A DNA stretch of 64,000 bases from the NCBI GenBank assembly GCA_020891255.1, contig BQFW01000006.1, positions 1,302,001-1,366,000 of the forward strand, read 5' to 3'. Below, piece by piece: positions 8,162 to 42,861 of the stretch. Positions within the stretch are counted from its first letter, which is position 1. Every line of letters begins with the position of its first letter. The position numbers were made by a program, and so were the translations under genes. This DNA comes from Entomortierella parvispora E1425 (taxonomy: Eukaryota > Fungi > Mortierellomycota). The notes beneath the pieces are model-generated. The model was given only the letters and a program-made list of their open reading frames with translations. It was not told where the DNA came from and searched no databases.

Positions 8162-11100
8162 AGCTGTCTGCTCTGCAACTTTTTTTTTGTTTGTTGGCAA
8201 TGCAAAAGAGGATCAATTATAAAACGAAAAACAAAAAACAAAAAAGAGTCGAAAGCACAGCGAGAGCAGGACGCGAGCGGATAGTGTTTGGGGATTACAG
8301 TGGAGTGAAAAAAAAAAAAAAGAGAGAGCGACAATGAGCAACATTTGAGAAAAAAAAGACAAGAGAACAGAGGAGATGGCTGTGTTTAGTGACCAGAAAT
8401 GTTCCAATGCAATGACCAATTGGACCTGCGGGTTTGCTTACCAGTGCTATCGGCCATGGTTGTGTATGTGAAAAAAGTGAGTTGGGTGAGTGTCGGTGTA
8501 CTCAGGGAGGGGTACGGTAAGGAGACCTTGTCTGGATTGCGCCGATGACGATGATTTTGTGCAAAGGGGAAGAGAGAGAGAGAGAGAGAGAGAGAAAAGA
8601 GTCAGAGACGAAGATCAAAAGGATGGGAAAGAAAGAGAGCAGATGGTGGATCAGCAAAAAACTTGTAACAGCAGCAAAACCAAAGTAGAAACCCAGAAAC
8701 CTGTAACCTATAATGACGGCCACCCCAAAGACCCCACGTCTCTGACAAGTGCTCATCCATCCATGTCCCCAAGACTAGACCCACCGTCTCGTCGTCTGAC
8801 AAGGTTCTAAATATAACAACGACCTTCCAATTTTTGACCCGTAGGGAAATAGTACATACCGGCAGAGTGGGTCCCGCTTGGCTCAAGACGCGACAGGGTC
8901 GTGTCTCGCCCTGCTGAGCGACCTCTCTTTCCTCTGTTGTTTCTGGTTCCTATTTTTTTTGGCCCCCTTTTCCCTGTTCCCTGTTCCCCCCTCCTCCGCT
9001 TTGTCTCTTGTTTCTTCTTGGGATGCTCAGCAATTCCTTTTTGGGGATGCTGAATGGGGGGTTTGGGTACTTGACCATGTACCTTCAAGGCAGCGGAAGA
9101 AAATAAATAGAAAAAAAAATAAGAGAAGAAAAAAAAATGAAGCCCAACAAGAGCGTACAAAAAAAAAGGGAAACATGAAACGCCATCATGCAAAACGCAA
9201 ATAAAAAAAAAGGTGCTTTTTTCATGTCCTTGCCCACGGCATCGCATAGCCATCCTGCGATCAAACATCAATTTTTTTTTGAAAGGGCTAAATGGGTCCA
9301 AGCCAGGCATTAACCTTCCTTCTGGCTCAGCTCTGAACTGCGCCTGTGAGCAATTTTCTTTTGGCGTCCATTAACCCCAGAGCACTGTCCAATGGGCGAA
9401 AAATGAAAGAGTGAAAGAACTGGATCGTGCGCTGTGTTTTGAATAGGAAGGATAGTCTTTTTTGTTGTCATTGGGTGTTCGCTCACGCGTCCAACAACCA
9501 AAACAACATGGACAACAACAGTAACCACCATCTGTTCCTGCAACTGTTGACAGTTGGAGAAAAAAGACTTGCTAAAATGGAGCGATAGGGGGCGAGGAAA
9601 TAATAAACAGGGGGGAAGACCCAAAAGTGGATAGGTGCACGTTGCTCCAAGATCTGATCGTGCTTCAAGTCGTTTCTCGTAAATGAAATAATTTCGAGCC
9701 CTGTGATCCGCACCCGCTCATCTCTTACATGGAGAATGTGCAGGCCAATGGGTGAGCCACAGGGACGATCCCACATCCCTTCGACCAAAAACATTTGGGA
9801 AAAATGTGGTCCGTACAACGTTGACAGGGTGTTGCCCTTCCTCCCCAGAGGACAAGGAAGAGAGCAGTGGCACCAGCCAAGGCACACAGGGTTCAAATGA
9901 CAGACCAGCAAAACACACCGACAAACAACAAACCGTAAACTCATTTCCTCCACATACTGTTGGTTCGTGTATAATCTTAATCTGTGGAAGTCGGGGACTT
10001 ACCGAGTCTAGGATCTGGTCCTGTGTTGACGGAGCCTTTAAGTAGGTGTTGACACTGAAGGCTGAGGCCAGAACGGGTGGACTGGGTTCAAAGGGCGCGT
10101 GAATGGAATTCAGGGGAGAGAGAAGGGGGAAGGAATAAAGCGGATAACACGGTATCCAGGATCAACGGTTGGGGTATGTCGTGCCTTGTAGAGATACCGA
10201 GGGGTTTGGTTGGAATGTCGTTGAGAGTAATTGTAGGTGATGGTGCCTGGAACCTGCTTCTTTCTGTCTTTTTTGCTTTTCGTTTGCAGAATAGAAGGTG
10301 AGCAAGAGAAGAAGCGGAGGTAGATAGTTGGAGAGCAAGATAGAAGGAAAAAGAGACAGAGAGGAAACGGAGTGCGTGCGCAAGAAACGGAGAGAAGGGG
10401 TGAACAGAGAGTTGAGGAACTAGGGAGTGTATCTGTTGGAGGATCCCCTCAGTGGATTATAAAGCAAGGATAGAAAGGGTGCAACTGAAAAAAAGCGAAC
10501 GGGGTGAAGAGAGGAGGTGAGTGGTGGACGAGGAGGAGGGACAAGAAGAGGATCACAGAGTAGTTGTACTGTGGACTGGGGTTCGGAGATGAAAGGATGC
10601 CGAGAGGACGGAGTGGGAGGGAGGTCAAGAGTGCAAAAGAAGAAGGGAACAAAGAGAAGAAAAGAAGAAATATCGGAGAAGGATAAGTTTGTGAATGAAC
10701 TTTTTGGTGGGGGTGGAGAGAAGAAAAGAGAAGGGAAGGGGGGGGGAACTGAAGGAACGGTTTGGGTCAACGGTGTCGACGGACGGATCTCTGAAAAAGA
10801 ATAAGGTCTTGTCAGAGATGGAAGGGAAGAAGGAAGAGGGGGGGAAGAGGACAGGAAAGAGAAGAAATGACTGAATCGGTGCAGTGGGGACCATAGAGGC
10901 AGAGAGTCCAGGCTGGCTGCAGACCCTGCTGTACAACTCGCCCATGGTCCCTCGACGGTCCTCTGTGGGTTCCTGATGGTCGGTTCTGCTCTGCCTACAA
11001 GACGGTCCTCTGCTTACCTGTTTGTAAGAGAAATCCAGTGAGCAAGGGCAAGAAGCAACAAAAAAAACTGAGCCAGAGGATCCCGGCGGGCTCACCTCTT

Positions 11101-22447: not shown

Positions 22448-25400
22448 ATGTCGTCCTGTTGGAATCAAGGCGCTGGATGGAACGGCCGAAACTGGACCTT
22501 CAATCGTCCTGCCGGGTCCACAGCTTCGGCAGTAGCCTACGACTACAGTTATGGCTCATATGGCGCGTATCGCTGGTGGGATGAAGAATCCACCTCGAAC
22601 TGCACAATGTTCCAGGATGGTCAGAACACGACTCATCATCGTGGTGGGCCAATGGACTGGAAAGTGAACGCCAACGTCAGTTACCTTGTGGCGACCTGCT
22701 ACATTTCCTTCCTGACCCTGATAGCTTTCATCATGGTCATGCGAAGTCGGACACCACTGCGTTTGATTGCATGTGGCTGCACAGTCCTCGGTCTATCGAT
22801 TGCCATCCTGGGTCTTCTCCAAAACCAATTCCGCTTCCCCAGGAACTGGTTCTGGCTCTGGAATTTTATAGCAGAAACGATAGGCGTGGTCGCGTTGACG
22901 TTCACCATCGTAACGGTCGGCAATGGCTTTTACCCTATATCGTGCCGGAGGAACAAGTTTTGGAAATTGTCAACAGGTCTGATCGTCTTGTACACCCTCG
23001 TTGCGATTGCGCATATTATTGCATACCTGCAACAAAAAGTTGTTTTCCACAGCATATCGGGAAGCGAGATTTCAAACCTACAACAAGAAGTGATCGATGC
23101 AGGGTTAAAGACCGCTGGGCAATTGGCGATGGAAGAGTGCTTTGCACAGTGTTTACAAAAGATCCCTGCTGGAAACTTGACTCTAACAGGGGTCGACAAT
23201 TGGACGCAACTTCCCTGGTCGCTCCGAGAAGTCTTTGCTCGACCCATTCAGTGGGCTTATGTGACCAACCAACTGCTGATGGTTGTGACCATTGCTTGGG
23301 CGTCAGTGTACCTTTTCGTGCCGCTGTTGATGCACCACCGCAACCGCCCAGACCTCGTCGATCGACCCATTGACAGCGATATGATGGCCATTGGTGTTTG
23401 GTACCTAAGTTGTGTCATGACCTTGACTGTGGTAAGCTATAAATGAAGGTCATTTTGCTTGTTGCTGTTGTTCAAATCCTTCATCCCATACACCTCTTTC
23501 TAACCATCAGATTTTCCTCCCATGTACCGGAAATTACTTTTTTAGGCCTGCACCATCCTCAATGTCTATTATTGTTTTCAAAAAGAACTCATATTTCAAC
23601 AACAAGTTCAGGCCTTGGATCTCTGCATTCGCGTAACGCTTGGACCCATTTTCTTCTTACCAGCCCCTTCGTTTTTGATAAGGTTCTATCGTGAACGATT
23701 CAAGAAGAATGGGTCCACTGTGGGCTGGTCACCTCGATATGGACGTCGAGAAGACAATACTGGACGCAGGACAGTTTGTTCGAATGGATCCTTTGGGACA
23801 TTGGAGGAGCTTGATGACAACGCAAGCTTTAGGGGACCCACGGACGAGATGGGACCAGGAACATCCAACGGAGTGACGTTAGAGGCGGTCATTGCTGCAG
23901 CATCCAGCAACCCTTCCAACAACAACCACAAAAGTCAAAAACACTTGAGCAGCGGGAGCCTCTATGATCGGATGAAGGGAGGCTTTCAGAGTCGGAACCG
24001 AGACGGATCCATGGACAGCAATAAGGTTTTTAATCAGGACTTTGACCTTGGTGATCATCCAGACTACCATACTACCGACGACGAGATTACTCATTCCAAC
24101 ATCGAGCCACCCAAGACGAGAGCTCGATCAGAGTTGTCGACTTATCAGGTCCCCGCATCACACTTCAGCAACGACCCTGTCTATGAGAAACAACAAGGAC
24201 CCTCTGTTCCGTTGGCTGGGTTTGTTCCCTCGAGCGTGGAAGTACAGCGGCCTGAGCCTGCTTGGATCGCTATGAAGAACTGGAGCAAAGATGTTTCGCC
24301 AGGACCTCCTGATATGGATAAGACGGACGACACGAACAAGGAAGTCCTAATCGAGAGAGAGCGGACTGGTATGTATTTTCTCATCTATATCATTCATGAA
24401 CTACAAAGTCTTTGTACCGACTTTTTAACAAATCTTTGTGCAAAATCCAGTTCCAACGGAGAACACAGACCGGACGTCAATGGCGGATCTAACTGGGACC
24501 ACAGGTTGGGAAATCGGCGGTTGGGGACACGACCGGGAGACTTCGGACGGAAACGAAGTCAGCCTTGCGCATCCATTGGAACAACCTTACCCATCGCTGG
24601 CTCCATCCCCTTCACCCTCGCCTTTGCCTGTATCCCGACCTAGGCGTAAAGGACGGACCACAAGTCTAGACTCTGCATTTGACGATAGCATTGACCTAGA
24701 CCTCGATAAAATCGACATCCCTGTTGAGCAATTGACTGGATTGCAGAGACAGTTGGCAGAATATCGCTCCGCCTTGCTCCCCGCCGTCCTGGCTATGCAA
24801 GACCTTGCCACCCGTGGACCACCCTCAGTGACGTTCGAAAGTGAGGACCAGGAAGACGAGGACGAAAAGACAGCGGACAATGGTCGACCTTTGCCTAGAG
24901 CAAATGCAGCCGCTGTGGAAGAGAAGCCCGTTCGATTCCGGGCCACATCCGAAGCACCATCGAGACAGCCCGTGCCGAGGATGACGGATACAATTCGGGA
25001 AGTGGAGTCTTATCCAGAGATGTTTCCCTTGCCACCCACCCACTCAGTCCCTGTGCAGTCCTGGGGCAAAGCAGCCAAGATCCCCAAGGCTGAGGGCGCC
25101 AAGGCTGCTGCGGCTGTTGCGGCTGCTGCCTCCAACGGCCAGAATGCAACGACTGAGAAATCTGGATTTAGAAAGTGGCTCCCAGGCAAGAAAGGTCACA
25201 CGACAGATGCCCCTCTTCAGGAAGCAACCACTGCACAGTCAAAGAAGGTTGAGCACAGCTCATCCACAGCTCCGTCTATGACTTCCCCTAGTGTTGTTGC
25301 TTTGGACACCAAGGGAAATAAGAACAGCAGCCACAACAACTCAAACTCTGACGGAACACATGCATCAAACAAGAATCCAAAGCCAAAGGATGGACGCAAG

Positions 25401-27704
25401 GGGGTATTCAAGTCATTAGGTCACCGCCATGGAGAGAAGGGTCGCACCAGTCAGGATCTCAACGATAATGAAAACTCCAAGGACCACCATATGGACGGCA
25501 TCAGCAAAACGGACGGTGCAAAGACTCTATCGTCTGCGAACTCGAAAGTACCAGCCACTGTCAAGGCGTTGGCTCTGGCCTCTGCAATGACCAACATTGA
25601 AGAAGAAGATGAAGCCGAGAAGGGGTTGCAGTACTATTACCCAGATCCATACTACAGTCTTACTGAGTTCAAAAAGCCCTCGAAAATTGGCGCGGATCAA
25701 ATGGGCACAGCCATGGACAGATCAACTTCGGGCGGGTCTACCAGACTCCCACTCTCTGCTGCCCCACTGTCCGAAGACAAGTTGTTCCGGAGCAGTGGAC
25801 CTGTCATTTGTACAGACAATCCCATGTTGGACTACACGCTGAACAAGAATGCTCGCCCAGCCTCCTCTATTTCACTCTCGCCCACTGTTTCGTCATTGAC
25901 AAACAAGTCTGCTCAGGGACCCAAAAAGATGACCAAGGCCGAGGCTTTGCTGCAAGGCGCTCTTTTGGGCAGTGGTTCGTCCGTTCTGAGCACATCCAAG
26001 CTGATCTCTTCTCCACTTCCAGAACCTCCCAAGGATTCGTCGGCCTCCATCATGTCCCGGTCTTCTTCAAACTCCAAGAAGTTTGGCAAGATCAAGTCAA
26101 GGAACAGTCGGTCAAAATCCGATGCAACAACTGGACTTACAGGCAATTCATCCTCAACGCCGGCAATGGAACGACCTAGCACGGACTCGATGGCGTCGAT
26201 GATGTCAAACTCCAGCGCCCTGACGACCTTGCCCATTACTACGACCCGGCAGCCTAGTGTCCCTTCGGCGCCTGTTATTCCTCCACCTGTTCAAACGTCC
26301 TTGTCGCCTCCACCGCGCCAGGGATGGGCTCGATCAAAGTCCTTTCAGGGCACGGCACCAGCCCTCACGGCCGCCGCGTTGATGCAAAAGCTACCAGTGC
26401 CGGCCGTCCCTGGAACCAACATGTCCATCGACACCAAATTGGCGAACCAACACAACTCTGGTTCAAGTACCAGTCAAAAGAGCAACAACGACGCCCCTCC
26501 TTCGTCCTCGAGTGAGACCAGAAGTTCTCGCGAGTCCTCCCAAGGCTCACCCTCCACAGCGACATCCTCCACCCATGAGAGTATCCTGACCTCTCTACAG
26601 CAACAGCAACTTTCGTCCTCACCACCACTGTCTCCACCTATGACAGCTTCCTCGACCGCATCATCGTCCTCGTTCAATCGTCTGGGTAGTCTCAAGCCGC
26701 GGACATCCATGGATCCAAGGAATAACTCGTTAGAACGGGATAGTGAGGTATCGAGATCGATGCTGTTGGGCAAGGATCGAACTGCGTTCAGCACCGCGGC
26801 CAAGGACATGCGTCGGACCAGTACTCTACACCAACGCTCAGTCGACAATCTGGCTTCGGCCTATTACTACAAACGGGCTGCAGAATTGAATGGAGCCACG
26901 GCGGGATCCCCCAGGAATGGGGCGGTCAACACCTCGAATGGATTCCAGTCTCATCAACAGCAGCAGTCTGCCCTTCCCTCTCCTGTTCCTTCTCCTTCGA
27001 CGCCATCCCAAGTCCAGTCTGGGTTCAGTTATTACGGTGTAGGAGGCAATGGAGGAGGAGACAGTGGCCGGAACTCGCCCTCACAACCCAATCCGATGCT
27101 CCATGGCGGTCCGTCTACACACTCTGTCCCATCTTTGGCGTCGTCCTCTGCTTCAACGCTGGCTTCTGGCTCTGCCTCCGGCCCTGGATCCGGCCCAGGC
27201 TTGTCAGCAGGCGTGGGTAGCTTTTATTATCAGAAGCAACATCAGGCAGGAAAATCCAGTGTGGATTTCACTGCCCCTGGCACAAGTACACCCGGGATTG
27301 TCATGATGCCAGGCGGGGGTTCATACATGTCCTCGCAGTCTACGACCATGGGAGGATCAGGGACAGGGACAGGGACAGGAGGAGAAGTTGGAGGAACAGC
27401 CATGACTGCGTCCTTGTCAGGTTCAAGAGGGATTTCGTCCTCGGAGGAACAACATAGTCGCACGGGGAGCATCACCAAGAGTAGCGCACAGTGGATCACG
27501 ACGGAAGATGACCCTTGGACAGTGGCAATGATTGCCCGTGCTCAACAACAGCAGCAGCAGCAACAGCAGCAACAGCAACAGTCGATCAAGTCCAGTGCTC
27601 CTTTGCAAGATTCACTCGGGCACGCTTCTTCGCGGGAGAGTGTCGACCGTCATTCAAAATTACTGGCAATTGTCCCAGCGGACTCAACCACAGGAGAATG
27701 GTGA
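22448..27704 (+). CDS. Seven-transmembrane protein B with glycosylatable N-terminus and ~1,300-aa disordered Ser/Pro/Gln-rich C-terminal tail, ~1686 aa; join(22448..23431,23546..24368,24451..27704)
   Basis: GTAAGC/TAG (phase 0) and GTATGT/CAG (phase 1) introns join ORFs 22430, 23615 and 24438 (5061 nt). There are 7 hydrophobic helices homologous to protein A, and N-x-S/T sites before TM1 and in a Cys-containing loop. Confidence 0.8.
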
Positions 27705-28285
27705 TAGGAGCTTGAGCTCAGGACCTATCTTGGGTCTCTCCGGCAACAGCCTCAGTGGCAATGGCGATGGGTATGACTTTGGGGTTAGCTTCTATGGATC
27801 GAGTCATCGCCAGCGCCCAGAAACAGTAGGCAGAAGGAAATTCAACATAGGTAGAACGTAGCACTCGAGCTTGCCTGTAAATAGTAAATAGATAGGACCG
27901 TGCGCTTCCACCCATGTTTTTTTTTTGTTGTCGAACTGAAAGAGCTCCGAGTTGAAGAAGGTCGTTTGTGAGCCGTCACAATTGTTCCCCAGCACGGCTT
28001 GCATACAGGAAATAAATGTGCATGATGACGGACGTGTGCATGGTACTGTGCAAAGTCCCAAAAGAGAAAAAAGAGAAACCCTCTGGACGCAGGGCATGGT
28101 GCCCCAAGAGTCATCCTCCTCCCCCCCCCCCCCTTTTTTTTTTTCTTTTGTGCAACTGGCGATGTTCATAGTTTCAGACTTTTTCGTCCTCAGGCTGAGT
28201 CGTATAAAAGGAAAGCGATCCCCATGCGTAATTATATCTTCAACTTAATCGTTCTCACCGACTTTCTTATTAACATATACTCCCA

Positions 28286-28504
28286 ATGCCCCGCATGCCT
28301 GCAAACCGCGATCTTGCCTCCAGCGCACCCCAGTCTCTGTTCCTAGAAGTGCTCAACGACCCCGAGGAAGAGCCTCAATTGCCAGGTGGCGACGACATGA
28401 ACTTTGTGGAGGCGCCTATTCTCCTTGGCGACCCTACTTTGAACTCTGAGAGCCAGCTCCCTCTGTCAGGCGAAAGCGAAGCTGAAGGCCAAGCCGAACA
28501 ATAA
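28286..28504 (+). CDS. Small acidic peptide P1 (72 aa), array member type A
   Basis: Intact ORF MPRMPANRDLASSAPQSLFLEVLNDPEEEPQLPGGDDMNFVEAPILLGD... with TATAAAA at 28203-28209 and four paralogous ORFs downstream. Confidence 0.65.
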   Translation: MPRMPANRDLASSAPQSLFLEVLNDPEEEPQLPGGDDMNFVEAPILLGDPTLNSESQLPLSGESEAEGQAEQ

Positions 28505-28962
28505 CGCGACAAAAGGTGTCATTGGACATGTACTTTTGTCTGGCATTCCCCTCCAAGACATGCTTTGGTTCCCATATTCAAAACGAGGTCAGAACAACAG
28601 TCATAGGTCCCCCGTGCATCTTCCCTTCATGATCTGAGAAGAGAGAACGGCTGCCGTCAAGAGACAAGACAAGAGAGACAAGCCCGAGCTGAGAACGTAG
28701 GAGGTGAGGTGGACAAGTAGCAACAATCGAACGCGTTCCTGAAATAAAACAAACCGCCACGACTTGGTGACAAGTCGCGCGTGGCACAATTTTTTTCCTT
28801 GCAGAGAGCCATACGAGGAACTCGCGCTTCAACGAGTTCAAACCAGTCTTAAGAGACCCAATGCCCTGGTTCATGGATATGCAATAAACTAAAAAAACAA
28901 CTCAACACTAAGTGTTCTGCTTAGATCGGGATCTGACAGGGGGGACTCAGTGAACTGGGGCA

Positions 28963-29335
28963 ATAGTGCACGGTGGATCATGACTGAAGATGGTCCTGGA
29001 CGGTGGTGATGATTGCGCGTGCTCGACAGCTGCTGCTGCTACAGAGTCAATAAAGTCGTGTCCGTTTGCAAGATGCTCTCAGGTACGCTTCTTCGCGGGA
29101 GATTGTCGACCGGCATTCAAAATACTCGCAATTGTCACAGCAGATTCAACCACAGGACTCAGGAGAATGGTGAGAGGATTTTGAGCCCAGGACCCATCTT
29201 GAATCTATCCGGCAACAGCCTCAGCGGCAATGGCGATGAGTATGGCTTTGGGGCTAGCTCCTATGGATTGAGCCATCGCCACCCACAGCAACAGTAGGCG
29301 AAAGGGGATTTCAACAATCGCAGCGCTCGAGCCTA
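28963..29335 (+). pseudogene. Decayed duplicate of the 7TM-B 3' coding end and 3' UTR (source ~27480-27870)
   Basis: Colinear with the source (gtggatca.gac.gaagatg..., attcaaaatact.gcaattgtc.cagc.ga.tcaaccacagga, tccggcaacagcctcag.ggcaatggcgatg). It is frameshifted and the CAG tract has collapsed. Confidence 0.85.
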
Positions 29336-29562
29336 CAATAGAGAGGCACTGTGGTCGCTGCTCATTATATACTTCCTGTGTCCCATCGATCCAGTCTGCA
29401 CAGCCGAATCGCGCAGAAAGAGGGCCAATCAAATTGAGCGACACACTTTAATCCTGCCTGCTGGTGTTCATACATAAATGGAGACACACCCCGCTCCCTG
29501 TGAGTAGTTTGATCTTCAGTCTCTCTCTCTCCACCTCTTCTTAACATACACACACACCCCCA

Positions 29563-29772
29563 ATGCGTCGCATGCCTACAAGCCGCACCAATCCCTCCCC
29601 TGTCGCACCCCAGTCGCTATTCCTGGAAGTGTTCAACGATCCCACAGAAGAGCCTCAATTGCCCGGTGGCGGCGACATGAGCTTTGTAGAGGTACCTATT
29701 CCCCTTGGCGAACCCACCTCGAATTCTGAGAACCAGCTCGATCCGTCAGGCGAAAACGAAACTGAAGGCTAA
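29563..29772 (+). CDS. Small acidic peptide P2 (69 aa), array member type B
   Basis: MRRMPTSRTNPSPVAPQSLFLEVFNDPTEEPQLPGGGDMSFVEVPIPLGE... A TAA in place of the CAA codon of the other copies removes the last three residues only. Confidence 0.62.
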   Translation: MRRMPTSRTNPSPVAPQSLFLEVFNDPTEEPQLPGGGDMSFVEVPIPLGEPTSNSENQLDPSGENETEG

Positions 29773-30199
29773 GCCGAACAATAACGCGACAAAAGGTGCC
29801 GTTGGACACGTGCCTTTGACGGCATTTCCCCCGAGACATGCCTTGGTTCCCATATTCAAGACGAGATCAGAAACAACGTAGGCCCCCGTGCATCTTTCCT
29901 TTATGATCCGACAAGAGAAAACGGCTGCCGTCAAGATATAATACAAGAGAGACAAGCCCAGTATCGAACGCGCTCCTGAAATAAAACAAACCGTCACGAC
30001 TTGGTGACAAGTCGCGCGTGGCACAATTTTTTTTTCCCTGCAGAGAGCCATATGAGGAACTCACACTTCAAGAATTCAAACCAGTCCCAAGAGGCCCAAT
30101 GCCTTGGTTCATGGATATGCAATAAACTGAAAAACAATACAACACCAAGTGTTCTGCTTAGATCGGGATCTGACAAAGGGGATCCAGTGAACTGGGGCA

Positions 30200-30590
30200 A
30201 TAGTGCACGGTGGATCACGACTGAAGATGGTCCTGGACGGTGGTGATGATTCCGCGTGCTCAACAGCAGCAGCAGCCACAACAACAGCAGCCACAGCAAC
30301 AGTCAATAAAGTCGTGTCCGTTTGCAAGATACTCTTGGGCACGCTTCTTCGCGGGAAATTATAGACTGGCATTCAAATTACTTGCAGTTGTCACAGCAGA
30401 TTCAACCACAGGAGAACGAGAGGAGTTTGAGCCGAAGACCCATCTTGGATCTATCCGGCAACAGCCTCAGCACCAATGGCGATGAGTATGGCTTTGGGGC
30501 TAGCTTCTATGGATTGAGTCATCGCCACCCACAGCAACAGCAGGCGAAAGCGGATTTCAAGAATCGTAGGTAGAAGGTGGCGCTCGAGCC
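30200..30590 (+). pseudogene. Second decayed duplicate of the 7TM-B 3' end
   Basis: Translates MIPRAQQQQQPQQQQPQQQSIKS...KLLAVVTADSTTGE, matching the 7TM-B C-terminus MIARAQ...SIKS...KLLAIVPADSTTGEW, with a frameshifted middle. Confidence 0.85.
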
Positions 30591-30823
30591 TACAAAAGAG
30601 AGGACCGCACGTGCCCAGGGTCGCTGCTCTTTATTCTTTTTCTCCCTGTCTGTGCGAGGGTAACTTTGCCTCTGATTAATAAATTCAAAGTGCCCGTCGA
30701 CCCGCAACTTGGCGTGGTTGGTCGGTCGACCGTGCATCTCTTTTGTCCTACAAAAGGAAGACACACCCCGCACGTAACTTGATCTTGAGCCTTCTCCGAC
30801 TTTCTTATTAACATATACTCCCA

Positions 30824-31042
30824 ATGCCCCGCATACCTCCAAACCGCGATCTTGCCTCCAGCGCACCCCAGTCTTTGTTCCTAGAAGTGTTCAAGGACCC
30901 CGAGGAAGAGCCTCAGTTGCCCGGTGACGACGACATGACCTTTGTGGAGGTGCCTATTCACCTTGGCGATCCTACTTTGAACTCCGAGAGCCAGTTCCCT
31001 CTGTCGGGCGAGAACGAAACTGAGGGCCAATTCGAACAATAA
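30824..31042 (+). CDS. Small acidic peptide P3 (72 aa), array member type A
   Basis: MPRIPPNRDLASSAPQSLFLEVFKDPEEEPQLPGDDDMTFVEVPIHLGD... It shares the upstream ttcttattaacatatactcccaATG with P1. Confidence 0.65.
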   Translation: MPRIPPNRDLASSAPQSLFLEVFKDPEEEPQLPGDDDMTFVEVPIHLGDPTLNSESQFPLSGENETEGQFEQ

Positions 31043-31534
31043 CGCGACAAGAGGTGTCGTTGGACACGTACCGTTGTCTGACATTTCCCCCGAGACATGC
31101 TTTGGCTCCCGTATTCAAGACAAGGTCAGAACAACAACCATAGGTCCCCGTGCATCTTCTTCCCTTTATGATCCGACAAGAGAGAACGGTTGCCGTCAAG
31201 AGACAAGACGAGAGAGATGAGATCTTAGGAGGTGAGGTGGACAAGTAGCAACAATCGAACGTGTTCCTGAAATAAAACCGTCAGGACTTGGTGACAGGTC
31301 GCCCGGGGCACAATTTTTTTCTTTCTTGCAACAAGCCATAAGAAGAACCCGCATTTCAAGAGTTCAAACCAGACCCAAGGGATGCAATGTCCTGGCTAGT
31401 GGATATGCAATAAACTGGAAAAAAAAAAAAAAAAAAAAAAAACGATGCCCATGTGCCATGCAAGAAAAAAGACTCAGATCTTGCTTAGATCGGGATCTAA
31501 CAAGGAAGACCCAGTGAGCTGGAGGACGACAGTA

Positions 31535-31582
31535 CCACCGAATCCGATTCTCTATGGCGGTCCATCTACACACGGTTCTGTC
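31535..31582 (+). pseudogene. Short decayed copy of 7TM-B internal segment (source ~27087-27130)
   Basis: aatccgattctctatggcggtccatctacacac matches aatccgatgctccatggcggtccgtctacacac in 7TM-B. Confidence 0.7.
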
Positions 31583-31977
31583 TGCATATTCTGTCCTCGC
31601 TGTCCACATCTCTGGGAGGAGCAGGAGCAGGAACGGACTGCTACAAAACAAAAACGCGCCTACGCAGCGAACGTGATCCTCCGTCATTAGCCCCCCTCCT
31701 TTCTTGTGTTCCCAAGAGAAAAAAAGTAAGTGATTCTTGTGGACCAGAGAGGAAGCACTTGTCAGGAACCTGATTGGCCCTCCCCCCGCCCTTCAGTTTT
31801 TTTTTTTTTTTTTTTTGCTCCTTTGCGTGTCAGAGTTTGCACCTATTCAACGAAAACCCTGGGCTTTGCCGTTTGTTTAACGTTTGTTTAAAAGGTAGAC
31901 CTCCCTGTGAGTAATTTGATCTTCAGTCTCTTTTTCTCTCTCTCTCTCCACCTCTTCTTAACATACATACACTCCCA

Positions 31978-32199
31978 ATGCGTCGCATGCCCACAAGCCG
32001 CACCAATGCCTCCCCTGTCGCACCCCAGTCCCTGTTCCTGGAAGTGTTCAACGATCCCACGGAAGAGCCTCAATTGCCCGGTGACGACGACATGAACTTT
32101 GTAGAGATAGTTATTCACCTTGGCGAACCCACCTCGAATTCCGAGAACCAGCTCGTTCCGTTAGGCGAAAACGAAACTGAAGGCCAAGTCGAACAATAA
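31978..32199 (+). CDS. Small acidic peptide P4 (73 aa), array member type B
   Basis: MRRMPTSRTNASPVAPQSLFLEVFNDPTEEPQLPGDDDMNFVEIVIHLGE... The upstream sequence is homologous to that of P2. Confidence 0.65.
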   Translation: MRRMPTSRTNASPVAPQSLFLEVFNDPTEEPQLPGDDDMNFVEIVIHLGEPTSNSENQLVPLGENETEGQVEQ

Positions 32200-32685
32200 C
32201 GCGACGAGAAGTGTCGTTGGACGCGTACCTTTGTATGGCAGTTTCCTCCGAGACATGCCTTGGTTCCCATATTCAAGACAAGGTCAGAACAACAGTCATA
32301 GGTCCCCCGTGCATCTTCCCTTTATGATCCGACAAGAGAAAGCGACTTTTGTCAAGATATAATACAAGAGAAACGAGCCCAAGCTGAGTACGTAGGAGGT
32401 GAGGAGGACAAGTAGTAACAATTGAACGCGTTCCTGAAATAAAACCGTCATGACTTTGGTCTTTTTTTTTCTTTCCTGCAGCAAGCCATAAGAAGAATCC
32501 GCATTTCAAGAGTTCAAACCAGACCCAAGGGACGTAATATCCTGGCTCATGGATATGCAATAAACTGGAAAAAAAAAAATAAAAAAAAAAAACGATGCCC
32601 ATGTGCTATGCAAGAAAAGAGTCTCAGATCTTGCTTGGATCGAGATCTTACAAGGAGGACCCTGTGAACTGGAGTATGACAGCAC

Positions 32686-32847
32686 CACCAAATCCGATGC
32701 TCTGTGGCAGTCCTTCTACACTCTCTGTCCCATTTCTGACTTCTTCTGCTTCGACGATGGCTTCTGGTTCCTCATCTGGTCCTGGATGCTGCCTGGGATT
32801 GTTAGCAGGTGCGGCAGCTTTTATTATCAGAAGCAACATCAGGCAGG
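32686..32847 (+). pseudogene. Decayed copy of 7TM-B internal segment (source ~27087-27250)
   Basis: Ends in agcttttattatcagaagcaacatcaggcagg, identical to ~27219-27250. The upstream part is colinear with PNPML...SVP.L.SSSAST.ASGS. Confidence 0.8.
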
Positions 32848-32865
32848 CCCCTATTCCATTGTATG

Positions 32866-33005
32866 TCTTCCCAAGCTAGAGCCTCAGTTGCCGGACCAAT
32901 ACGCCGCAGACCTCATGTGGGGATCTGCTCACCTTGGTGGCGATTCTGTGGACTAGCCCATGGCACCAGATACAAACAAAAAACAACCCCCAAGACGAAT
33001 GATTA
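32866..33005 (+). pseudogene. 5'-truncated copy of the P5 C-terminal module
   Basis: Reads EPQLPDQYAADLMWGSAHLGGDSVD*PMAPDTNK, with TAG where P5 has GAG. It has no own start and is fused to 7TM-B-derived DNA. Confidence 0.7.
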
Positions 33006-33342
33006 ACGCAGTTGTGTAAGTAGAAGATGCTTACTCAGTTCTGCACCCCTATGCTTCGCCTCAGTCTTGCTGAAAAATACAAAATCTCGCCGTTTGCTAT
33101 GGGGTCGCGCTGCCAAAAGAGGAAGGGCCGACTGAGCACCCTCCTCCCGCTGTCGCACTAGGGCCGTGTGACAGATTGGGACGAAGGGCGACCCCATGGA
33201 AAACAGCAGAAAAAAAATATTTACCTGATGAGGAGGATGGGTTCAGAGCTGAGCACCGCACGCATCCCAGACTATTGAGAATAAAAAGCAAAAGCTGGGT
33301 CCTTCATCGACTCGCTTTTCTCATCTTGATATACACTCCCCA

Positions 33343-33627
33343 ATGCCTTGCATGTTTACAAATCACACCAGACTCACCCCCGAGTCCCTATTCCTAGAGG
33401 TTGTATACTTTACCGAGGAAGAACCTCAGTTGCCAGATCAGCACATTGCAGACCTCGTGGTGGAACCTATTCACCTTGGTGACCTTGGTGACCTTCCCGG
33501 GCAAGAACCCCAACTGTCCGACCATTACGTTGCAGACCTCATGATAGGGCCTGCTCACCTCGATGGCGATTCTATGGATGAGCCCATGGCACCAGATACA
33601 AACAAAATCAACCCCCCAAACGAATAA
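33343..33627 (+). CDS. Small acidic peptide P5 (94 aa), divergent member with two EPQL-core modules
   Basis: PESLFLEV...EEEPQLP-DQHIADLVVEP-IHLGD...EPQLS-DHYVADLMIGP-AHLDGD, with the same ccccaATG start context as the other members. Confidence 0.55.
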   Translation: MPCMFTNHTRLTPESLFLEVVYFTEEEPQLPDQHIADLVVEPIHLGDLGDLPGQEPQLSDHYVADLMIGPAHLDGDSMDEPMAPDTNKINPPNE

Positions 33628-33855
33628 TTAGCCTGCCTCCTTTCTTCGAGTCCAAGAGAATCACTTTCTTGATTCGAGTTGATTGGCCCTTCTTTCGGTT
33701 TTGTGTAACTTGATTCTCGCTGGAAAGCAGAAAAAAGCTTGGGCACAAGAAAGGAGGGCGGCTATTAACGTGATGGAGTCAACGCGGTATACTTACTCTG
33801 TCTGACGCTCTCTTGTTCTGCGCTCCTTTGCTCCGCCCCAGAGCATCGCCACGCT

Positions 33856-33892
<37 letters not shown>

Positions 33893-36800
33893 ACGAAAGT
33901 ACTCAACTTCGTCAAGCTAGGGCCTAAAAAAAGGGGGGGAGCAAACTTCTGCTTTTGAGCCAGCGTGAATAAACAGTTGCAATCGATACCTATGGCATAA
34001 AAGACAAGATCAATGTATCTACATGAGCGACAATGGGCGAACGACAATAAGCCAAGAGAGAGAGAGAGGCTTTCAGATTTAGCGACAAGAACAGGACGCA
34101 AAAGACCTTCAACGACAGAATCCAGAGACTTCCTGGTTGATGAAATTCCTCTTTCAGCTGGTGATAAACTTGACATCAGTAGCCTGCTAAGTACATGCAT
34201 TCTTCTCTCGAGGGATTGGATCTCGTGGGACTGGTTTGAACTCTCGAAGCGGCGCTTCCTTGACCAGCTCAGGGAGGGGGGCCAGTTTGGGCGATGTGCC
34301 AGATGGGGAACTGTCCTTTCTCCGGCCTATTTTGGTCGACCTACCTGGGCACGGGACGATTCTCGTCTCAAGTTGGAAAAGGATGTTCGTCAGAGACACC
34401 GCTCTGAGAAGAAGAATAGCTTTGCCCCAGCCATCGCTCAACGTAAGTTTTCATTTAAAGAGTTTTATTGTCGGTCGCTTCTCAGCAGGGGGTAGGAGAG
34501 AAGTCGACACTGATAGCCCAATGCTTTGACTTGAACCGCGGAATTTTTTTCATGTTTTTGAGTGCGGGACATCGAAGCTCAAAACAATGCGGCTTTGGGC
34601 GTGGATCCAACTCATAATCTAGGGGTTCTCCTCAATCGCGGGCGAGGACGACATGCAACTCTTAGATGTGTGGCGGCCTGTCAAGGTGATGGAGATCACA
34701 CTCTGTCTATTGCCAAGGATGTTCAGGAGACAAGCAGAGTCAGCCATGCTCGAGCGAGAACATTTTTGATCAATGCGAAATCTCTGTTTGGGAACAGGTG
34801 TGTGTACCATTCAGCTCTCATGATCGTTTCCTTCCGTTGTGTAATCCAGCTCCCGGAACCCCTCAATTCCTATTTTCTTCTTTGTGGGGTCAATGCGAAC
34901 AACCCCATTCTGATCTGAGCAACCTGTTCATTTTACGAGACAGCACGGCCAGACTTTGTTTTTGGCATGTGGAGGAAGGGAGGGGAAACTAAGATTCGAA
35001 AACCCTTCTTTCTCCACATGCAAAGAAAAAAAGCTCACTAGTTCTCGGATGCCGGAGCATAGAGTTGAATTAGCTGGGGTTTGTACCCTTTTGACGGCTG
35101 ATTATCTTCTCGGCCAACATTATTGTCTGCCAAGTGATGGGTCCTAATGCTTGCAAGAGAAACAGAAAAACCGAAAGCCAATTTTGCTTCGCCCTGAATA
35201 CGAGAGTTGTGGACCATGTGCTCCGAGTTTTTGAAAAGTCAATCACGGGCGTTCGAACACCACCCTCTTGAGAGTGTCTGATACAAGAGCCAACCAAGAT
35301 TTTTTTTTGGACTCGGGCCATGGCTCTCTTCTTCTCTTTTGTTCTGCACGATTCCATGACATGCTCCAATTGAGTTTTTAACCTACCGGTTGGTTGGTTC
35401 CCTCCCTCTTAAGATCGCGCCCCAATGCTCTCATTACTCTTCACTTGATTCTCTCATCCTGTTTGTGATTCTTTTTATGAGCCATCTTTTTGGTCTGTGA
35501 TAAGAGGCACCCAAATCTTCAGCCCATGCGACAGCTTTTAGGGGTAAAAGAGAGTTTAGGCAGTGGAATGACGCCTTCCCACTATCTTTTTTTTTCTCAC
35601 GAGCATTTGCAAAATTCATGGTATTGCTGAAGGGTTTGAAGGGAGAAGCAAAGAATTGTTGCAGGAGGAGGGACCATGTGTCTTCGTCTGTGATGTATAC
35701 TGATCTATTTGTGCGACTGGCTCAATGTATTCTTCGATGCGTGAAATGGTTCATTTTGAGCCTCTTATCGCCTCTCTTTCCGCCTTCAATCCAATAGAGA
35801 GGTCCCGGGCAAGGAGTGGTCATCGAAACTGTCCAATGGTTCAAGGGGTCCCTCCCCATGCCTTGGTTTGGTTGGGCCAATTTGCCTTCGATGTGACATT
35901 CCTCAAAACGAGTGGTCAATATGATCTTTAGTCTGCTGTGGTGTAATTTGCGCATCCGACACAAAAAAAAAAAAAAACACGGACACACGCCATCTTTCAT
36001 GTCCAAGTCGAGCGAGACTGATCGCCAATAGAACCTAGCCCCACGTCCCTTTCTCGTTCGTTCTAATGTTCATTGCCAGAACAACTACGGAGCTCTCAAG
36101 ATGATCAAAGGAAAAGGAGCCAACCACGAGAACAACGATAAAGCGCAGCGTGGGAGAACCTACGAATTGACCAACGATCGTCTAGACCCTTTCTCTTCTA
36201 TTTGGATGCCCTCGAATAGGTCATGGTTCTCCGAGAGGATGTGCGCTCTCGGCACAATGGTTGGTTAGTTCAGTTGCATGTGTTCTCAGATTTGCGGGCT
36301 ACCAAAAAAATGAGGTCGATGGTTCCGCCCTTGCTCTCCACGGAAGAAGAGGGCAAAGGAGGGTGACAACAATCTTCATATTTTGCATCCATTGTGCATT
36401 GTGCTACCGACCTTTGTTCACAACAGCACTTTCCCCTTCAGCTCAGGGCTCAGACTGTGTTTTGAAGGAGTGAATAGATATAATTCTTATCCAAGTCGGA
36501 CCCAGGATAATCTGCCAGGATACCTGGATAGGCCGCGAGCGGGCGGGTATGGATCCTATCTCCATTATTGTTTGGGGAAAGAAGGAAAGAAGAGAAAATA
36601 TACTGGGGTCCTACAGAAGGACGGGTTTGCTCTTTGTTCGATGAAACTGACCAGACCGACCGTCGTGTGGATACCTTGACATACCTGTCTATCGCAGTAT
36701 CTAAACTTCAGACTAGAGTAAATCAACCTTTAGCGTTTTTTTTTTTGACTGACAAAGAGTTGGACTTTTGGTCGCAGGTTAATTAATAGCCTTTGAGAAA

Positions 36801-40419: not shown

Positions 40420-42861
40420 ATGACTGTCGCTGTCACGCCCATGGACCAAGGGACCTTTCAGATTCTACACCAGTCTGCCCCCGAGATTGCTTTTGAGGAT
40501 ATCGAGCACATCATCTTTGATGCTCATATCCCTGGCCGTTATGGCAACATCCACGTTGGACGCTGGCAAGGACATGAAGTTGAGATCCGTGAGCCTTTTG
40601 GCGATCTTGCCACAGTTGAACGAGAGGTCCGATTGCTCTACAAACTCGGTAACCATTGCCCTCAGATCTTGAAGCTGCATGGATTCACGGTCGAACCGGG
40701 CACAGGGATTGCCTACTTGGTGGTTCAACACAACGAACACGGAACATTACACTCGTACCTGCTCAACTTCCATGCACACTTGACCTGGCCCGACCGGTAT
40801 AACCTGGCCATGGATATCGCCCTGGGTCTGAGGTATCTGCACTACAAGGGATACCGACACCGACACTTGCACTCTGCTAGCGTCTTGATCGATACCAATG
40901 GATCCGCAGTCCTCTCAGACTTTGGATCGACCAGGGACTCGGAGGTGATCTCGTCCAGAGAACACACCGCACGGATGGGATACATTGCTCCCGAGCGCCT
41001 GATCAAAAACGGTACCCGCTACTCGATCGAGTGCGACATCTATTCGCTCGGCATGGTCTTCTGGGAGATCGCATCTGGTCGTCCTCCATTTGAGAACCTA
41101 ATCATGGCTTGCAATCCCCATGACGGATCCTTGATGAGTCTGGCTCAGAACATCATGGCCGGACGGAGAGAAAAACCTGTGGATGGAACGGACCCTATCT
41201 TCGAGGACCTTTACACGCGCTGTTGTCATGCCAACCCCTTGGAGAGACCCTCAATTGATTGGATCATCCAAACCCTTGGCGTCCTTCTAAAACAGCCCTC
41301 AGGAAACCTTCACCGAAAAATTGAGGATCTTAGTCTTGGTAACGTTGGTCGATGCTGACGTTAGGACTATTCTTTACACTTATTCTTGCTTGCTTACCAT
41401 GTCTCTTTACTTGTTGTGTTGTATATAACAGAAGATCAGCCCAAGAAGCCTGCCTATTCCGCCAAAGCTTCCTCTCGCGACTCTCATGGATCTATTGCCT
41501 CACGTTCAGTCAAGTCCTCGCGCTCCGGCTCAATTGACAATGAGAGAGATATGCCCAGCCCCATGGTCCGATCCCGCGAACTTCACATGACGCCAAGAGA
41601 AGGAGAATACCTCCATAGTAACGGGTCTGGATCCACTATTCCTCCTCCCATCCCACCCGTCTCCCACCGACGCAAAATGTCTGCTGTTTCCTCCATGGCC
41701 CCCTCTATGCGCTCCATGTCTATCAGCAGTGGAAGCTCAACAGGATCCTCCAGTGGCGCTAGCGGACCAACTATCCCTGCCAGGGACTCTCGACGTGTCT
41801 CAACTCTGTCTTCTGTCAGCTCGATCGAGATGCCCAAGTACGATGCCGCTTCTGTTCCAGTCCCCAAACGAAACCGCTCTCTGACAATTTGGGAGGCCTG
41901 TCAGGAGGGCAATGTGGAGCTGGCGGAGCACTTTATTCTGGCCAACGGCGCCAACCCCAATGCACTGATTTCCTTGCCTCCTTATTCCATGTTGGCTGAG
42001 GTGGCGCCTCTTCACGTTGCTTGCTTTTACCAACCCGAAAACCTGATGGCTATCCTGCGCGTCCTGCAGCGCCATGGGGCAGTCATGCAACTGGTCACCA
42101 CCATGACTCACCAGTCGGCCCTTCACATTCTCTTGGAACATGCCACTAACTACGATCTTGCCCTGGAGGCCTGCCGGTTCCTGATGGTCGATTGCAAGTT
42201 ATCCGTGAACGACCAGGACAACAGAGGCGTGACTCCTTTCCACAAGTTTCTCAAGAATCCCCACTTGAGTGCTCGTCCCTCCGTAGCTGGATCCGAGTTG
42301 TTTACGCTCTTGAGGGAACGCGGTCAAGCTAACTTGCACATCGAGTCGCACCACGAGGGCAACGCGCTGGGAATGGCAGCTCGGTATCTGAGAGTGGATC
42401 TGTTGAAGCTGTTCCTTCTCACGGATCTGGCTTCATCGGACCCACGGAGTCTTGGATATGCCCTGAATCAGGTTGACCAGCCATTGTCCGAGACGAGACC
42501 TTCCAAGAGCTCTCAAGATCTCTGTCGATCCATCCTGATGGAGTGGACGGGCGAGAAGGGTGAAACAAAGCGGATTCAAATGGCGGAGAGAATTCTCGAG
42601 CACCAAGGCTTGGCCGCGCCTCATTCGCCTCTCAACACGTCCTCATCTCTTCAATCAGCTGCACCTCCCAAGGCACGCAAGCAGAGCATTGGTTTGCTGA
42701 GCCTGGGAAAATCCAAGAAGTCCTCAAAGGAGGACCATCCGCCCGTTCCTGCCGTGCCCACAAAGGCCACCAGTGATGTGGATACCGCCAGACGTATCCT
42801 CCAGAGCACGGTGGCCAAACAGCAAAAGCTCAAACACTTTATGACCCAATCTGGCTTTTAG
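40420..42861 (+). CDS. TKL-like pseudokinase with C-terminal ankyrin repeats, ~782 aa; join(40420..41338,41432..42861)
   Basis: Kinase fold motifs (GRYG, EREV, DIALGLRYLH, SDFG, YIAPE, DIYSLG..FWEI.SGRPPF, RPS) and ankyrin-like repeats (IWEACQEGNVELAEHFILANGANPN, PLHVAC, DQDNRGVTPFH). A phase-1 GTAACG/CAG intron joins the two ORFs. Confidence 0.88.

Follow-up and report, generated by a model that had tools for sequence, protein, structure and literature searches.

A 64,000-nucleotide (nt) stretch of the Entomortierella parvispora E1425 genome (contig BQFW01000006.1, positions 1,302,001 to 1,366,000; hereafter the window, with coordinates counted from its first letter) carries five short open reading frames (ORFs), P1 to P5, in a tandem array downstream of an orphan seven-transmembrane (7TM) gene. 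With a probability of roughly 0.6, we read these ORFs as a lineage-restricted gene for a disordered, acidic microprotein that was recently amplified by unequal crossing-over; judged from its sequence, the array would be an orphan small-ORF gene amplified in a tandem array of variable copy number and mis-annotated as two chimeras. In the history that we propose, the ancestor would have had a single copy of the gene just downstream of the 7TM gene, and in E1425 a segment of about 1.26 kb, comprising the gene, its proximal promoter, a downstream block and a slice of the 7TM 3' end, would have been amplified head-to-tail via unequal crossing-over, with exchange between units after the amplification. 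P5 would be the old copy, under purifying selection together with an orthologue found in metagenome assemblies, and P1–P4 would be a young derived clade that underwent a burst of amino-acid change, lost the ancestral stop and had its constraint relaxed. The protein (66–94 amino acids (aa), presumably cytosolic) would probably bind partners via short linear motifs, rather than being an enzyme or a secreted peptide.

The five intact ORFs of 69–94 aa that a first-pass annotation had placed here are all present in the ORF list (Table 1), and the motifs that it had called invariant, P[QE]SLFLEV, EEPQLP and IxLG, are found in five of five ORFs in the protein alignment. Its description of the products as acidic and without a signal peptide also agrees with our results: the proteins have 12–19 aspartate plus glutamate residues versus 2–3 lysine plus arginine residues, with an isoelectric point (pI) of about 4.05 in every case, and none of the five has a hydrophobic stretch that could serve as an h-region (Kyte-Doolittle hydropathy over 11 residues, maximum ≤1.4; no dedicated signal-peptide predictor was run). 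All five are proline-rich, and cysteine is absent except for a single residue in P5. AlphaFold2, given a six-sequence alignment, returned a predicted local distance difference test score (pLDDT) of 59.6 and a predicted template modelling score (pTM) of 0.14, i.e., no confident predicted fold; a Pfam search of the peptides identified no family, and their neighbours in language-model and structure atlases included none that was meaningful. The product is thus predicted to be a disordered acidic protein of 7–10 kDa with no sign of secretion. Its more conserved parts, namely the basic N-terminus (MPRxPxNR), EEEP and SLFLE, both invariant, and P[IV]x[LF]GD, look like short linear motifs and are the segments that we infer to have a binding role.

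The copies differ among themselves. P5 contains an internal duplication of a 34-aa module (EPQL, core, HLG; repeat 33407-33476 / 33491-33560), and its stop codon is at a position equivalent to that of the metagenome orthologue (INPPNE and FIPPDAN, respectively), i.e., the ancestral stop is kept in both; in P1–P4 this stop is lost and the reading extends ~10 codons further, with P2 ending 4 codons early through a CAA-to-TAA change. A sixth, broken member of the array, resembling P5 and without a start codon of its own, lies in the tail of unit 4. The first-pass annotation had described a cccaATG context and an A-rich box upstream of each ORF, and both were borne out: the start context CCCAATGC together with the start codon is invariant in six of six sequences (the five ORFs and the orthologue), and an A-rich TATA-like box lies 60–95 nt upstream of every copy, located by pattern search at 28203, 30749 and 33280 and by alignment only for P2 and P4 (29471 and 31887).

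The open frames are not assembly artefacts, as short-read contigs from the source sample match the window with 0 differences and 0 gaps over the stretches covered (most or all of each ORF). The summed depth of the contigs over the ORFs is near the single-copy level, so the genome holds no additional near-identical copies. In X3, another sample that carries this species label, a 7.3-kb contig has one unit, which matches P3 best (the match on record spanning 30743-31275) and then runs directly into the tail of unit 4; samples under one species label thus differ in copy number.

Table 1. Features of the array and its immediate surroundings, in window coordinates.
Feature	Position	Strand	Description	Basis
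P1	28286..28504	+	72 aa, alpha type, nearest P3	ORF list, protein alignment, codon score
P2	29563..29772	+	69 aa, beta type, nearest P4	ORF list, protein alignment
P3	30824..31042	+	72 aa, alpha type	ORF list, protein alignment
P4	31978..32199	+	73 aa, beta type, without Pro before IHLG	ORF list, protein alignment
P5	33343..33627	+	94 aa, oldest copy, nearest outside orthologue	ORF list, alignments, tree
Broken P5-like fragment, tail of unit 4	32867..32992	+	80% DNA identity to 33493-33619	
P1 promoter-proximal stretch	28203..28285	+	A-rich box, CT-rich tract, CCCAATG; counterparts upstream of P2–P5	alignment
Block D, unit 1	28505..28960	+	equivalents after P2, P3 and P4	between-unit sliding identity
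3' end of upstream orphan 7TM gene (parent)	27082..27861	+	source of tail fragments in units	
7TM-tail pseudo-copy, unit 1	28964..29316	+	parent 27482-27847, 78% identical, frameshifted	
7TM-tail pseudo-copy, unit 2	30201..30589	+	parent 27482-27870, 81% identical	
7TM piece, unit 3	31534..31582	+	shorter copy of same piece as in unit 4 (27082-27250)	
7TM-tail pseudo-copy, unit 4, more upstream piece	32683..32847	+	parent 27082-27250, 80% identical	
Unique block past array	34202..34414	+	70% with L004 downstream of its peptide gene; far edge of ancestral single-copy locus	
Exact short-read contigs	28307-28615 (P1); 29521-29860 (P2); 31960-32277 (P4); 32818-33654 (P5)			

When 1.84 billion proteins were searched exhaustively with a profile, two strong matches emerged, EMPS_04447 and EMPS_04448, which are the deposited models of the array itself, and one metagenome ORF (P0040; 66 aa, E-value 2e-6) with its own start and stop. 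P0040 is encoded in four metagenome assemblies, on contigs that overlap and agree exactly where they do. The longest of these, L004, runs colinear with the window and matches the 7TM tail over its positions 3-255 (75%), the region 28281-28752, which comprises the ORF and the first 250 nt of the downstream block D, over 568-1027 (66.6%), and the unique block past the array over 1300-1506, the intervening stretches being unalignable. As this syntenic locus has a single peptide gene where E1425 has five, the ancestral state would have been single-copy.

Searches elsewhere returned little else. An initial word-index protein search found no homologue and a later one found only the three known proteins (EMPS_04447, EMPS_04448 and P0040); a tblastn search of the corresponding loci in Gryganskiella, Gamsiella and Mortierella alpina, which are syntenic and were located via their 7TM orthologues, identified no homologue, and the intergenic DNA of these three loci does not align with the window. 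A protein-pattern scan of the metagenome collection confirmed no further orthologue, and a degenerate DNA pattern scan matched five unrelated bacterial contigs only. We considered a 79-aa ORF of Gryganskiella cystojenkinii (L001 16944-17183), predicted in the annotation of that genome as a gene whose product is acidic and rich in Gly and Gln, and occupying the corresponding intergenic site with the 7TM orthologue on one side and the kinase gene on the other, and rejected it as a homologue (hhalign probability 0.07%, tblastn E-value 9.8). The sensitive search having found no homologue outside a narrow clade, the family appears so far to be confined to E. parvispora and one uncultured relative. 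The expanded small-protein family claimed by the first-pass annotation is real, lineage-restricted and amplified in E1425, with a homologous ORF at the metagenome locus and none found at the Gryganskiella, Gamsiella and M. alpina loci.

The case for a coding gene is carried by the comparison of P5 with this orthologue, with which it groups in the tree ((P1,P3), (P2,P4), (P5,orthologue)). The nonsynonymous and synonymous rates between the two (dN 0.33, dS 1.35) give a dN/dS of 0.24, and differences by codon position number 19/14/30. In neutral simulations, in which the same number of substitutions with the same share of transitions was placed at random and only stop-free outcomes were kept, 17.4–18.0 synonymous changes were expected versus the 26.2 observed (P 0.002–0.004); the same test gave P 0.66 on the 7TM-tail pseudo-copies of units 1 and 2 (U1 and U2) and P 0.05–0.98 on block D in arbitrary frames. 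Twelve residues, five of them the run SLFLE, are invariant in all six sequences, and the 10 nucleotide sites that vary within their codons are synonymous without exception (10/10). Across the paralogue alignment the ratio of nonsynonymous to synonymous differences (pN/pS) is 0.50 in the ORF frame versus 0.82–0.99 in four other frames, the antisense frame that shares third positions giving 0.52, and by codon-usage log-likelihood the ORF frame is the best of six in each of the five ORFs (0.16–0.30 per codon, versus 0.19 for long ORFs). The 222 ORF columns hold one indel, of 3 nt, where about 6 would be expected, versus 14 in the 497 flank columns, 12 of which break the frame (Poisson P 0.005 for zero frame-breaking indels in the ORF). 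The ancestral gene and P5, for which there is an intact syntenic orthologue and a dN/dS below 1, are on this basis very probably protein-coding. The copies P1–P4 alone give no such substitution signal, and we take them to be recent derivatives whose constraint has been relaxed or altered.

These data bear on an alternative in which the ORFs are incidental and the conserved object is a non-coding block, either a piece belonging to the 7TM gene, namely its 3' untranslated region (UTR) or a regulatory stretch downstream, or a long non-coding RNA, that was recently duplicated as a segment, its frames being open since the copies are young and the sequence is rich in GC and in codons for acidic residues. 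We consider this unlikely, given that the period-3 pattern and synonymous excess between P5 and its orthologue have no counterpart in the controls, that the invariant motifs vary at silent sites only, that frame-breaking indels are missing from the ORF only, and that the ATG context is invariant. In addition, P5 is the best conserved copy despite sitting 5.6 kb from the 7TM stop and having lost block D, and for block D we found neither a conserved RNA fold (RNAalifold consensus -4 kcal/mol) nor an Rfam match, the latter search returning only two sub-threshold chance hits elsewhere.

Several observations nevertheless weigh against a coding gene, or at least against constraint on all of its copies, and some of them also favour a non-coding block. 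P1–P4, when tested against one another or against the orthologue, have simulation P values of 0.10–0.50, which is the range of the pseudo-copy and non-coding controls and fits neutrality, and the stem branch leading to them carries 4 synonymous and 15 nonsynonymous changes. A 60-codon frame stays open in 24% of neutral simulations at this divergence, so openness alone proves little. Block D matches the ORF in its conservation, between units (75–96% similarity over about 450–700 nt downstream) as much as against the orthologue, so the whole block may have a non-coding function; it could possibly be a 3' UTR. With a single outside orthologue, the selection test rests on one pair and about 60 codons. 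Upstream, the A-rich box is not kept in the metagenome orthologue, where only the CT-rich tract and CCCAATG are, and the base at -3 before the ATG is C, although Kozak contexts usually favour a purine there. Finally, no X3 contig covers the first half of P5 at ≥80% likeness, which is odd for a constrained copy.

The first-pass annotation had pictured peptide ORFs kept under selection amid decayed flanking DNA, and this must be revised in part: protein-level constraint is supported for P5 and its orthologue, and so for the family taken as a whole, and not for P1–P4, whose substitutions are indistinguishable from neutral; the ORF exceeds its flanks in freedom from indels but not in substitution conservation; and the flanks, with about 450–700 nt conserved downstream, are not simply decayed.

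A contig set from the same sample as the assembly (X2; 25 Mb of contigs, its kind guessed as DNA) was not used as evidence. It includes exact low-depth contigs over 28154-28383 (the region upstream of P1 and its first 33 codons) and 28504-28686 (the start of block D), and none over P2–P4. Were X2 an RNA library, it would indicate low-level transcription through P1 starting upstream of the A-rich box, and the contig 28154-28383 could then, in favour of a non-coding block, be read as 7TM read-through.

The layout of the array is that of a tandem segmental duplication. The units lie head-to-tail at a spacing of 1150–1288 nt and are 75–95% alike over about 900 nt, each in the order promoter-like stretch, ORF, block D (~450 nt), A-rich tract and fragment of the 7TM gene 3' end (7TM ORF at 24438-27704). 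Fragments of the 7TM gene are found in every unit, and the one-unit contig of sample X3 is a further mark of such a duplication. Similarity is mosaic, with the promoter and ORF pairing U1 with U3 and U2 with U4 and the 3' parts pairing U1 with U2 and U3 with U4, the pattern that unequal exchange or conversion leaves in a tandem array. The co-duplicated 7TM-derived DNA is frameshifted, as the first-pass annotation had stated: the tail pseudo-copies carry frame-breaking indels of 1, 2, 1, 7 and 1 nt relative to the parent, and that of U2 still holds an 83-aa open frame. Runs of 23 A residues after AATAAA in units 3 and 4 had raised the possibility of retrocopies; this was rejected, as the promoter is duplicated too and long A runs occur at more than 10 other places in the window, both of which point to duplication at the DNA level. 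Also rejected was a minus-strand gene in block D, where ORFs of 90–109 aa can be read through in just two units, U1 and U4, and are broken by frameshifts in U2 and U3. Unit 5 has no block D. A dispersed repeat (33629-33764) begins 2 nt after the P5 stop and is followed by a run of 31 A residues at 33857-33887; it is matched by many contigs from all three samples at about 90% likeness, with a summed depth above 2000, and looks like a short mobile-element fragment that replaced the block D of unit 5.

The deposited annotation treats the array quite differently. EMPS_04447 (160 aa) consists of codons 1–43 of P2, part of the unit-2 7TM-tail pseudo-copy as exon 2, and P3 from residue 13 (30862), while EMPS_04448 (145 aa) consists of codons 1–61 of P4 and P5 from residue 10; a cluster look-up lists both as hypothetical proteins of E. 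parvispora, and we saw no annotated model for P1. As these models contain P2–P5, gene finders fused the ORFs rather than missed them, contrary to the first-pass expectation that they would probably go unnoticed: AUGUSTUS annotated P2–P5 as two chimeras, and the metagenome gene caller called the orthologue.

Taken at face value, the two models would make the ORFs exons of longer spliced genes. Both are in GenBank, their splice sites are canonical GT-AG (in EMPS_04447 GTACCT after 29691, donor GTAGAA after 30569 and acceptor CAG before 30862; in EMPS_04448 GTTAGG after 32159 and acceptor CAG before 33368), and in the genome paper AUGUSTUS was run with cDNA input derived from RNA-seq (PMC8759367), an E1425 RNA-seq dataset existing as DRA013164 (PMC8759367). 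We regard this structure as improbable all the same, since the models join paralogous copies of one ORF and take in a frameshifted pseudo-copy of another gene as an exon, and since multi-mapping reads from repeats can yield false junction hints. Moreover, a conserved ATG context and a stop codon belong to every one of the ORFs, and at the orthologue locus just one ORF stands by itself, complete from start to stop. Mortierellaceae introns are usually far shorter than those implied here, which measure about 0.3, 0.7 and 1.2 kb. What we see instead is an annotation failure in which paralogous copies and a pseudo-exon have been stitched into two models, EMPS_04447 and EMPS_04448, that NCBI and UniRef now carry.

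The arrangement of proline residues suggested yet another reading, in which the ORFs would be precursors of peptides made on ribosomes and modified after translation (RiPPs), of the proline-delimited, prolyl-oligopeptidase type, a previously unseen class in a fungus of the early-diverging Mucoromycota. The precursor would have a leader (MPRxPxNR...SLFLE...EEEP, or QLP), an acidic core, 11–15 residues long and with Pro at its end, and [IV]x[LF]GD as the follower, with P5 a two-core precursor; were this true, the tandem amplification in E1425 would diversify the core. In keeping with it, EEE is followed by Pro in all six sequences, and another Pro stands ahead of [IV]x[LF]GD in five of them. The entire module occurs twice in P5, one more piece of it is found in the tail of unit 4, and the stem branch to P1–P4 altered mainly the putative core. 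Such precursors typically form small tandem gene families (PMC9233826), and those of the MSDIN/cycloamanide group (amatoxins and phallotoxins, processed by prolyl oligopeptidase) resemble the array in being a small expanded family without a signal peptide (for the array by hydropathy, as above), with Pro before and mostly at the end of a short middle segment and conserved motifs flanking it. MSDIN precursors are about 35 aa long with a conserved 10-aa MSDIN leader (PMC9233826); the array members differ in being 66–94 aa, 2–3 times that length, in starting with MPR, MRR or MPC, and in sharing no sequence similarity with them.

We think the RiPP reading highly improbable for further reasons. The middle segment is strongly acidic, the core-terminal Pro is missing in P4 and the Pro of QLP is missing in the orthologue. 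The core is not hypervariable, as the N- and C-termini vary as much: between P5 and the orthologue, the core is about 43% identical, compared with 61% for the leader and 47% for the follower, and in P1–P4 the N-terminus is as variable as the core. Among the ten large ORFs scanned in the 64-kb window there was no prolyl oligopeptidase or other peptidase, P450, methyltransferase or DUF3328 protein. A dikaritin-type route fares no better, there being no hydrophobic h-region (by hydropathy; no signal-peptide predictor was run) and no Kex2 site (KR or RR) beside the repeated modules.

An orphan microprotein gene in a tandem array, which we favour, has partial parallels in known systems. BSC4 and MDF1 are young or de novo yeast genes and examples of orphan small protein genes of fungi; like them, the array ORF is short, restricted to a narrow clade, predicted to be disordered, under weak to moderate constraint and located in former intergenic or 3'-flank DNA beside an older gene, and unlike them it is amplified to a five-copy tandem array. 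For a test of a non-coding origin, as in de novo genes, the nearest genome that has the locus, Gryganskiella, is too diverged to align. The yeast CUP1 locus is a copy-number-variable tandem array with a co-amplified piece of a neighbour gene, and the E1425 array shares with it head-to-tail units of 1–2 kb that combine a small ORF, its promoter and a fragment of the adjacent gene, copy number that varies between isolates, and units that are mosaic as from unequal exchange or conversion; the array units differ in being 5–25% diverged rather than near-identical, and the protein is unrelated to metallothionein. By analogy, the product resembles DSS1/Sem1 in having about 70 aa, a pI of about 4, no fold, and conserved hydrophobic or aromatic residues set in acidic tracts. 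However, there is no detectable homology between the two, and DSS1 is universal and single-copy whereas the array family occurs in a single lineage.

Provided that the gene is real, the array would offer a natural series for the study of young microprotein genes, from a single-copy orthologue through a constrained old copy to four recent copies, and the series would span a lost stop codon, one new premature stop and copy-number variation between isolates, with the frameshifted fragments of the neighbouring gene within the units as a built-in neutral control. The array is of modest general importance unless its products do prove to be peptide natural products, and there is no known link to the Mycoavidus endosymbiont that was the reason for sequencing the strain.

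The 7TM gene itself shows some irregularities at its 3' end. Relative to both of its own pseudo-copies it has one extra base in the run TCAAAATT at about 27655 (region 27630-27861), as a consequence of which the long 7TM ORF stops at 27704, whereas the homologous reading goes on as far as 27861 after a change of frame; in the metagenome relative the equivalent stretch stays in one frame, with an in-frame stop after GPILG instead. The extra base may reflect a true frameshift, or else nanopore sequencing, on which the assembly is based, may have miscounted a homopolymer. Most Mortierellaceae orthologues of this gene (set P0001-P0036) end in a C-terminal motif of about SPEFYSRPSINRSGSE, which is missing in the E. 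parvispora gene (24438-27861) and in the metagenome relative; a similar motif, PSLSPEFHSR, occurs on the minus strand near 10126, probably in a paralogous 7TM gene. That the peptide or a block at 34.3 kb might be this ancestral C-terminus in detached form was considered, a tblastn search having hinted at 34277-34363 (E-value 0.005), and rejected, since a profile of the motif SPEFYSRPSINRSGSE found nothing in 27–35 kb and the similar residues stand in reversed order in the peptide.

Further downstream, the block 34013-34495 is 70% conserved with L004 1261-1547 and has a 160-aa open frame in the window that is interrupted by a stop in the relative, with tblastx matches between the two of up to 63% over 38 aa; within it, 34212-34251 is a 40-nt inverted match to block D (28825-28865). 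Two short islands are conserved with Gryganskiella cystojenkinii (36206-36241 with L001 19371-19406, and 38358-38406 with L001 21583-21642); both are colinear and lie inside an otherwise unalignable, gene-poor stretch of 12 kb upstream of a kinase-ankyrin gene (40420-42861), and they may be regulatory elements. Besides this kinase-ankyrin gene, the neighbours among the ten large ORFs scanned include C2H2 zinc-finger genes and a DDE transposase, the last encoded by a 421-aa ORF on the minus strand (1342-2610) with a DDE_Tnp_4 (Harbinger-type) transposase domain (E-value 8e-21).

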